From Blepharisma stoltei ATCC 30299 (taxonomy: Eukaryota; Protista; Ciliophora): a stretch of 64,000 nucleotides of DNA. The DNA is taken from NCBI GenBank assembly GCA_965603825.1, contig CBFDEM010000054.1:1-64000 (forward strand). The letters are read 5' to 3'. The translations under genes and the position numbers were made by a program. The notes below the pieces were generated by a model that was given only the letters and a program-made list of their open reading frames with translations, did no database searches and was not told where the DNA came from. Shown piece after piece: positions 37,234-37,877 of the stretch (positions are counted from its first letter, which is position 1; each line of letters starts with the position of its first letter).

Positions 37234-37289
37234 ACACTCCTCAATATAGAGACCCTGTAAGTTTGCTCCCTATACTTCACATAGAGTGT
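37234..37289 (-). promoter_or_regulatory. Eukaryotic SECIS element (GUGA core, type II-like)
   Basis: Minus-strand RNA: ACACUC-UAU-GUGAA-GUAUAGGGAGC-AAA-CUUACAGG-GUCUCUAUAU-UGAG-GAGUGU. Helix I is ACACUC/GAGUGU, the core is a UGAA/UGAG tandem G.A quartet, helix II is ~10 bp, and the apex has AAA plus a mini-stem. Confidence 0.85.
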
Positions 37290-37307
37290 ATTGCCCAATC
37301 TTCTGGG

Positions 37308-37877
37308 CTAACGTCATCCTCCTTTTTTATTAAGATCAACGCCTATGTCATTCCACGTTGCCTTTTTTCCACATCCTTTCGCTTGAGGTTTTGAATCTTG
37401 AGTCGGCAATAAGTGGGTATTCGTCTCTTTTCTGTCTAATCTAGCTTGATCTAAAAGCCTTTTTTTGGCTTCTTCTTTAGCTTTCATTTCTTCTCTGATA
37501 GCTCTTTGTTGTCTTTCACGTTCTTTTTCTTCTTCAGATTTTAAAAGTTCATTAATTTCTGATGAAGTTACTTCTATGATTGGCAGAGCAATGTCCAGTA
37601 TTTCAACTGCACTAGAAAATTCATAGTCAGGGCCATTATCTCTATAGCCGATAAGATATAAAATGTCATTAATATTGCGAAGAGACAACAGCTTAGTTTG
37701 TATAGCTTTATTTGTTTTTTTTATTGACCTGAATTTGGCTTCTTCAGGGTGTTCAGATATATTTTGAAGTAATTTGATTAGGATTAAAATCCCATTTTGA
37801 GCATTGTTTGGTCCATTTTCTTGGATTAATTGTTGAAGGCGATGGTATATTTGGGTGTCAAGATCTTCTGACTCCAT
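37308..37877 (-). CDS. PUB-domain protein, candidate selenoprotein ending GG-U-R (189 aa, Sec188)
   Basis: PUB motif LIKLLQNISEHPEEAKFRSIKKTNKAIQTKL...LYLIGY, then a coiled coil, then GGA GGA TGA CGT TAG. A SECIS lies in the 3' UTR. Confidence 0.85.

Follow-up and report, generated by a model that had tools for sequence, protein, structure and literature searches.

A candidate soluble PUB-domain selenoprotein of Blepharisma stoltei, with relatives from ciliates to animals

A selenoprotein with a PUB domain has already appeared in the literature by name. Among 42 algal selenoprotein families, Jiang et al. (2020) include "PUB: PUB domain-containing protein"; in the available portion of that paper, it is one of the least widespread families and lies outside the three novel ones (PMC7539508). 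The first-pass annotation of the locus described here had held that no PUB-domain selenoprotein was known, a claim that the algal entry overturns. Other lists are without such a protein: the six genes of the Tetrahymena list do not include the gene that combines a PUB domain with Sec (PUB-Sec; PMC2612030), the 21 families reported in a 2012 survey that covered sponge, sea anemone, limpet, annelid and amphioxus contain no PUB protein (PMC3473315), and the PUB-Sec family is missing from a 2020 table of families in eukaryotes (PMC7435645). No description of the family in ciliates or animals was found in these three papers, which cover the literature incompletely. SELENOS is a protein of 189 aa with Sec at position 188 (PMC3628699). 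The Leu-Tyr-Gly terminus of p97 is the binding site of PUB domains, which places them at the D2 face (PMC10641518). A YxxN(x9)Y motif is essential to the PUB pocket, and SPATA2, which has Val at the first Tyr, binds no PIM (PMC6995525). A UGA codon can carry two meanings, set by SECIS elements, namely Cys and Sec in Euplotes and Trp and Sec in Amoebophrya (PMC3737529, PMC6394959). In Blepharisma, UGA is reported to encode Trp, and a tRNA-Sec has been reported from B. stoltei (bioRxiv 2023.10.09.561518).

The window analyzed here is a 64,000-nt stretch of the B. stoltei ATCC 30299 genome (41.46 Mb, 64 contigs) that begins with CCCTAACA telomere repeats. Its PUB-Sec gene has no introns and comprises 189 codons plus a stop, encoding a protein of ~21.7 kDa (Table 1). 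As first reported, the gene ends GGA GGA TGA CGT TAG, giving the tail DIGVDLNKKGG-UGA-R, and its sole other Trp codon is TGG; there is one TGA (codon 188), one TGG (codon 175) and one Cys codon (169), the last lying 19 residues before the TGA. The public protein, P0001, starts at an upstream ATG that adds 24 aa found in none of the homologues, and its C-terminus is written GGWR, while the public proteins of its relatives end at G. Hence, the expectation that standard annotation would be wrong is confirmed: the window gene and its relatives are misannotated at the Sec codon. The UTR was likewise correctly described as GC-richer than its surroundings, with 33% GC in the UTR bin versus 18%–28% across the next 300 nt. 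The downstream neighbor (minus strand, below about 36800) encodes a DHHC palmitoyltransferase with a TGA at the conserved Trp after the DHHC. SELENOK has a DHHC enzyme as a partner. The arrangement in the window is probably due to chance, as the neighborhood differs at homologous loci.

Table 1. Features of the PUB-Sec gene in the window
Feature	Position	Strand	Remarks
Coding sequence	37308..37877	minus	189 aa, Sec188, start at MESED
PUB domain, residues 3-112 (Pfam core 26-82)	37542..37871	minus	N39, F49, K53, N56 kept; Leu36 replaces first Tyr
Long charged helix, residues 115-155	37413..37535	minus	conserved L..Q...DR.E
Cys169	37371..37373	minus	not conserved in the PUB-Sec family
DIGVDLN motif, residues 177-183	37329..37349	minus	conserved; tail predicted to lack regular structure
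UGA, codon 188, putatively read as Sec	37314..37316	minus	Gly-Gly before, Arg and TAG after
5-bp hairpin	37293..37308	minus	begins 6 nt past UGA; resembles a Sec redefinition element
SECIS element	37234..37289	minus	GUGA core, apical AAA, type I-like; core begins 33 nt past UGA

Is there a genuine SECIS element behind this gene? In the predicted fold, helix I pairs 37289-37284 with 37239-37234, the core consists of GUGAA (37280-37276) and UGAG (37243-37240), helix II is a perfect 10 bp with one further pair, and the AAA lies at 37264-37262, 11 nt past the quartet; the folding z-score of the hairpin is −2.6. The original description of a complete SECIS thus stands for helix I, core, helix II and AAA, but not for the mini-stem, in place of which RNAfold predicts a plain 10-nt apical loop. 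Rfam SECIS models have no match in the window region, and SECIS_1 gives one weak match across the whole B. stoltei genome. A descriptor of our own (RUGA core, helix II, unpaired AA, GA, helix I energy) matches both strands of the window (128 kb) only once, at the SECIS of the PUB-Sec gene. Across another 489 kb of the same genome, it matches twice, once as a weak false positive and once behind a GPx gene. A loose pattern search of the genome was uninformative but served as the source of background DNA. Our covariance model, which is clade-biased and misses distant SECIS elements, was trained without the window hairpin and places it top among the non-training matches in 105 kb (22.6 bits, E 0.023); genome-wide, it gave no match among the 150 scored of 31,937 candidates. 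The small hairpin just past the UGA was also considered as a conserved SRE and rejected, as no equivalent was seen in close homologues.

UGA is a common sense codon in this genome (68 TGA versus 67 TGG in long ORFs), including at the Trp position of the DHHC neighbor. Together with the reported Trp meaning of UGA in Blepharisma (bioRxiv 2023.10.09.561518) and the short distance from UGA to SECIS, this speaks for a reading in which B. stoltei decodes codon 188 mostly as Trp, giving GGWR with a vestigial SECIS, or in which the relatives simply terminate at the UGA. Several observations stand against it. The SECIS is intact, and the genome has the full Sec machinery, encoding tRNA-Sec(UCA), SepSecS, eEFSec and SBP2 (E 1e-20 to human SBP2); this includes each of the three components, tRNA-Sec, EFSec and SBP2, on which the selenoprotein proposal had been said to depend. 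A PSTK candidate (L123:1477-2223) is a 248-aa P-loop kinase whose best NCBIfam match, far under the cut-off, is seryl-tRNA(Sec) kinase. A second gene, encoding GPx (L033; G000:C62:663039-663362, minus strand), has a TGA codon for the catalytic residue, with a SECIS of the GUGA type 14 nt past the stop, making it a good positive control for the descriptor; the six remaining complete GPx genes encode Cys at this residue. No thioredoxin reductase with a Sec tail is found among the three loci examined in the genome.

The homologues bear on the codon more directly. DNA was compared at 27 distinct homologous loci, 16 of them identified by scanning for the DIGVDL motif and thus independently of the codon at issue. 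Gly-TGA is found at 26 loci and Cys (TGT) at one, with no TGG and no plain TAA/TAG, the outcomes that had been named as counting against Sec. The TGA is followed by one extra codon and a stop at 24 of the 26 loci (Gly 13, Arg 10, Lys 1), and by an immediate stop at the other two. Thirteen loci, including those of sponge, coral, chiton and annelid, end TGA-x-TAA/TAG, and the Gly-TGA pattern holds in standard-code animals too. In ciliates with UGA as the sole stop, the first TGA is by itself weak proof of Sec; because the one-codon extension past it is conserved, UGA as a plain stop makes no sense. In one metagenome, locus L091 has the tail Gly-Cys-Gly-Cys-Glu-stop versus Gly-TGA-Gly-TGA at the near-identical L098. 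At L091, TGT stands at the position of the Sec UGA and also at that of the next UGA, and the SECIS is still present. The pair appears to be an instance of the Sec/Cys exchange typical of redox selenoproteins, and it hints that the second UGA could sometimes be read as Sec. With Gly-TGA so nearly invariant, the SECIS kept and the Sec machinery present, the original selenoprotein reading is strongly supported, and codon 188 of the window gene very probably encodes Sec. Part of the B. stoltei product may still be GGWR, with a Trp-tRNA competing for the UGA, but a predominantly Trp reading here, or a plain stop in the relatives, is very unlikely.

The SECIS is conserved along with the codon. By the strict descriptor, an element lies downstream at 23 of the 27 loci, among them a weak annelid element at a distance of 1.1 kb; relaxing the core or loop raises the count to 26, and the descriptor finds none at one locus, which has a short UTR. 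Across an alignment of 14 elements, helix II pairing reaches 88% (34%–51% in slid registers), and all nine of its pairs show compensatory change, which is the covariation that had been proposed as a check. Arm pairing is 152/180 versus 91 ± 6.5 after arm swap. The pairing counts are inflated because the elements were chosen by folding. Rfam SECIS_1 matches the coral (32 bits), chiton, annelid and two ciliate elements, all under the gathering score. In three of the homologues (L038, L041, L042), the SECIS is part of a transcript-like contig. The spacing between UGA and SECIS in mammals has a minimum of 51–111 nt. The distance from UGA to core is 31–43 nt in most ciliate members, below that minimum, 72–73 nt in coral, sponge and chiton, and 200–265 nt at Tetrahymena-like and Protocruzia loci. 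Unusual variants occur at L039 and L042, with a UUGA core in sponge and, at L042, an apical CGA instead of AAA; L103:1264-1360 has an AGGA core and the tail G-TGA-TGA. At the ciliate loci L087, L091, L096 and L099, the SECIS is closely followed by a tRNA gene on the other strand.

How widespread is the family? Ten close homologues (47%–54% identity) all end after KKG or KGG, and a profile search yields about 75 clusters of 170–230 aa with the same layout as the window protein. Gly is the last residue before the UGA in 71 of the 97 full-length hits, none of which goes on with Trp or Cys except the window gene's own public model. Named ciliate members come from Tetrahymena thermophila (EAS03226.2), Protocruzia and Pseudomicrothorax, further members from Platysulcus and Ploeotia, and animal members from the sponge Halichondria, Porites corals, the annelid Owenia and the molluscs Solemya, Liolophura and Potamilus. 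With tails checked, the family spans Tetrahymena, sponge, coral, chiton and annelid; the animal genes were examined at the last exon and UTR, and the bivalve, euglenid and stramenopile members are known from protein evidence. The range suggested at the outset (ciliates, alveolates and stramenopiles) was therefore right for ciliates and, at the protein level, for a stramenopile, but too narrow, as animals and a euglenid also have members. On this distribution, the family appears to be old in eukaryotes, animals included. Protist contamination of the animal assemblies was rejected because the scaffolds are multi-megabase, introns are present, the sponge, chiton and annelid genes have a common intron just before the last glycines, and the animal sequences cluster in a tree (support 0.95), together with one further sequence.

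Several records at the edges of the family deserve mention. The sponge member carries the wrong name "UBX domain-containing protein 6-like". In the ESM Atlas, a matching 214-aa cluster has Mollusca as its commonest phylum, and two look-alike clusters of 185–186 aa have Basidiomycota as their commonest known phylum. To our knowledge, Basidiomycota are fungi without Sec, so the look-alike clusters may be non-Sec relatives or mislabelled records. In one member, P0044, two EF-hands are fused ahead of the PUB domain, and the tail is again DIGVD..GGG.

What does the PUB domain bind? Pfam PF09409 matches the window protein with E 1.6e-16 (60.4 bits, cut-off 34.3). An AlphaFold2 model (mean pLDDT 90) consists of the PUB domain, the long helix and a tail that lacks regular structure. 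Among solved structures, the PUB domains of UBXD1 and PNGase come closest (TM 0.86 to the latter), and the rmsd between the PUB model and the p97-bound PNGase domain is 1.3 Å. No membrane segment is found in the window protein (top 19-residue hydropathy 1.33), in keeping with the earlier description of it as free of a membrane anchor, and its predicted solubility is supported. At the pocket, the window protein departs from the YxxN(x9)Y core (L36, N39, F49). The first place is L/I/V/M in 75 of 76 family members, while the UBA-PUB proteins of the same genome retain YxxN. This, with SPATA2 as a precedent, argues for a selenoprotein whose PUB domain binds some other PIM-like motif, a deubiquitinase (compare SPATA2) or its own DIGVDLN tail, with the Sec tail as a redox switch on a protein–protein interaction. 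DIGVDLN resembles D-L-Y PIM motifs, and DIGVDL is highly conserved within a tail that has no predicted fold. We consider such a ligand possible but unlikely, given that 68–75 of the 76 members retain N39, F/Y49, K/R53 and N56, the residues responsible for binding the PIM Tyr and the free carboxylate, and that the closest structures are p97 binders. The K/RxxN carboxylate motif is present in the window protein (K53, N56), and both B. stoltei Cdc48 genes end EEEDLYS, a tail of the PUB-binding type. If codon 188 is Sec, binding of p97 by the PUB domain is somewhat more likely than not, and the p97 cofactor role first proposed for the protein is plausible. A VIM-like K-x5-AA-x2-R occurs in about ten close relatives only and is absent from the window protein; a VIM in the helix was accordingly dismissed as a family trait.

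There are three hints of redox chemistry. First, there is the Cys form at L091. Second, a paralogue on the same contig (L023:1423-2301; G000:C54, about 198 kb) keeps the PUB domain and helix, with 46% identity to the window protein over 151 residues, and has a nucleoredoxin-like WCGPC thioredoxin domain in place of the Sec tail; P0016 is its apparent orthologue, cut at the Trp of WCGPC. Third, an unrelated member, P0132, has a WCPPC thioredoxin domain fused before an intact PUB–helix–tail module. A further candidate fusion, P0042, was discarded on re-examination. The Cys of KGCGKK was correctly placed relative to the UGA in the first-pass annotation, but its suggested role as a redox partner fails: the column holds Phe, Pro or Tyr across the family, and Cys169 was rejected as a resolving Cys. 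As no Cys position is conserved, we infer that oxidized Sec is recycled in trans, and the two independent thioredoxin fusions point to a nucleoredoxin-like thioredoxin as the recycler.

These pieces can be assembled into a mechanism. The ribosome, directed by the SBP2-bound SECIS, would insert Sec at codon 188, even though UGA means Trp elsewhere in the genome. The product would consist of a PUB domain, followed by a helix of 40 residues and a flexible tail that terminates in G-G-U-R. The PUB domain would dock on the p97/Cdc48 C-terminal tail, on the side from which unfolded substrate emerges, and the helix would project the Sec tail, such that the exposed selenol could act by reduction or exchange on disulfides or oxidized cysteines of substrates or of the p97 machinery. 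Oxidized Sec would then be returned to its reduced state by the thioredoxin. A soluble, p97/Cdc48-tail-docked selenol redox cofactor is the best explanation of the locus, with a probability of roughly 0.55; for the redox role as a whole, in the form proposed, the sequence evidence gives about even odds.

The Sec tail could instead be a selenium-sensing stability switch, in which termination at the UGA exposes a Gly-Gly or K/R-x-G C-degron and the adaptor is destroyed. Truncated SELENOK and SELENOS are known for C-degron ends of this kind. The Gly that so often directly precedes the UGA, the single residue past Sec and the lack of a conserved partner Cys are all consistent with such a switch. 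The Cys form and the thioredoxin-for-tail paralogue point instead to thiol chemistry, and in the B. stoltei genome, failure to insert Sec yields Trp rather than a stop. We think the switch improbable as the main function, although it is not exclusive of the redox cofactor.

What are the implications of such a family? First, animal selenoprotein catalogues are treated as nearly complete, and this family escapes homology-based finders because it has almost no Cys homologues and Sec lies one residue from the end; its members are truncated in RefSeq and GenBank. Second, if the redox-cofactor reading is true, a C-terminal Sec would have become linked to p97 independently for a third time, in this case within a soluble protein. 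Third, a soluble protein should be easier to express and assay than SELENOK and SELENOS, whose Sec chemistry remains open. Fourth, the Tetrahymena member makes the family directly testable, and the B. stoltei copy offers a reporter for competition between Trp and Sec at one UGA with a very short SECIS distance.

How does the window protein compare with known systems? With SELENOS and SELENOK it shares a penultimate Sec, a Gly-rich disordered tail after a long helix and, by its proposed role, a link to p97. It differs from both in lacking a transmembrane segment, and no sequence similarity to them was found. Its proposed contact with p97 is from the PUB domain to the C-terminal tail, whereas SELENOS uses a VIM to contact the N-domain, and the family lacks a conserved resolving Cys, whereas SELENOS has Cys174. 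Membership in the SELENOK/SELENOS group is therefore ruled out by the missing membrane anchor, VIM and resolving Cys. UBXD1/UBXN6 and PNGase share the fold and most pocket residues with the window protein, which has a Sec tail but lacks the UBX, UBA and transglutaminase domains and the first pocket Tyr. The dual UGA would be a Trp/Sec case in a heterotrich, already implied by the reported tRNA-Sec. Among ciliates, Turanov et al. in 2009 reportedly described Euplotes crassus ep22, a 22-kDa selenoprotein said to have no assigned function. By this description, ep22 resembles the window protein in size, and it may be an earlier sighting of the same family. The algal "PUB" family shares a PUB domain and Sec with the window family, a comparison made by name only, and the two are quite likely the same; the available portion of the algal paper mentions no ciliate or animal member and no function (PMC7539508). 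Even if they are identical, the animal and Tetrahymena members are probably undescribed. It is doubtful that the family is neither algal "PUB" nor ep22 but an unrecorded one, as old as the split between ciliates, euglenids and animals, providing a membrane-free p97 cofactor with selenol chemistry at the substrate exit and lost before vertebrates. Most likely, the window gene belongs to a family so far present in the literature by name only, with a far wider range than reported, invertebrate animals included.
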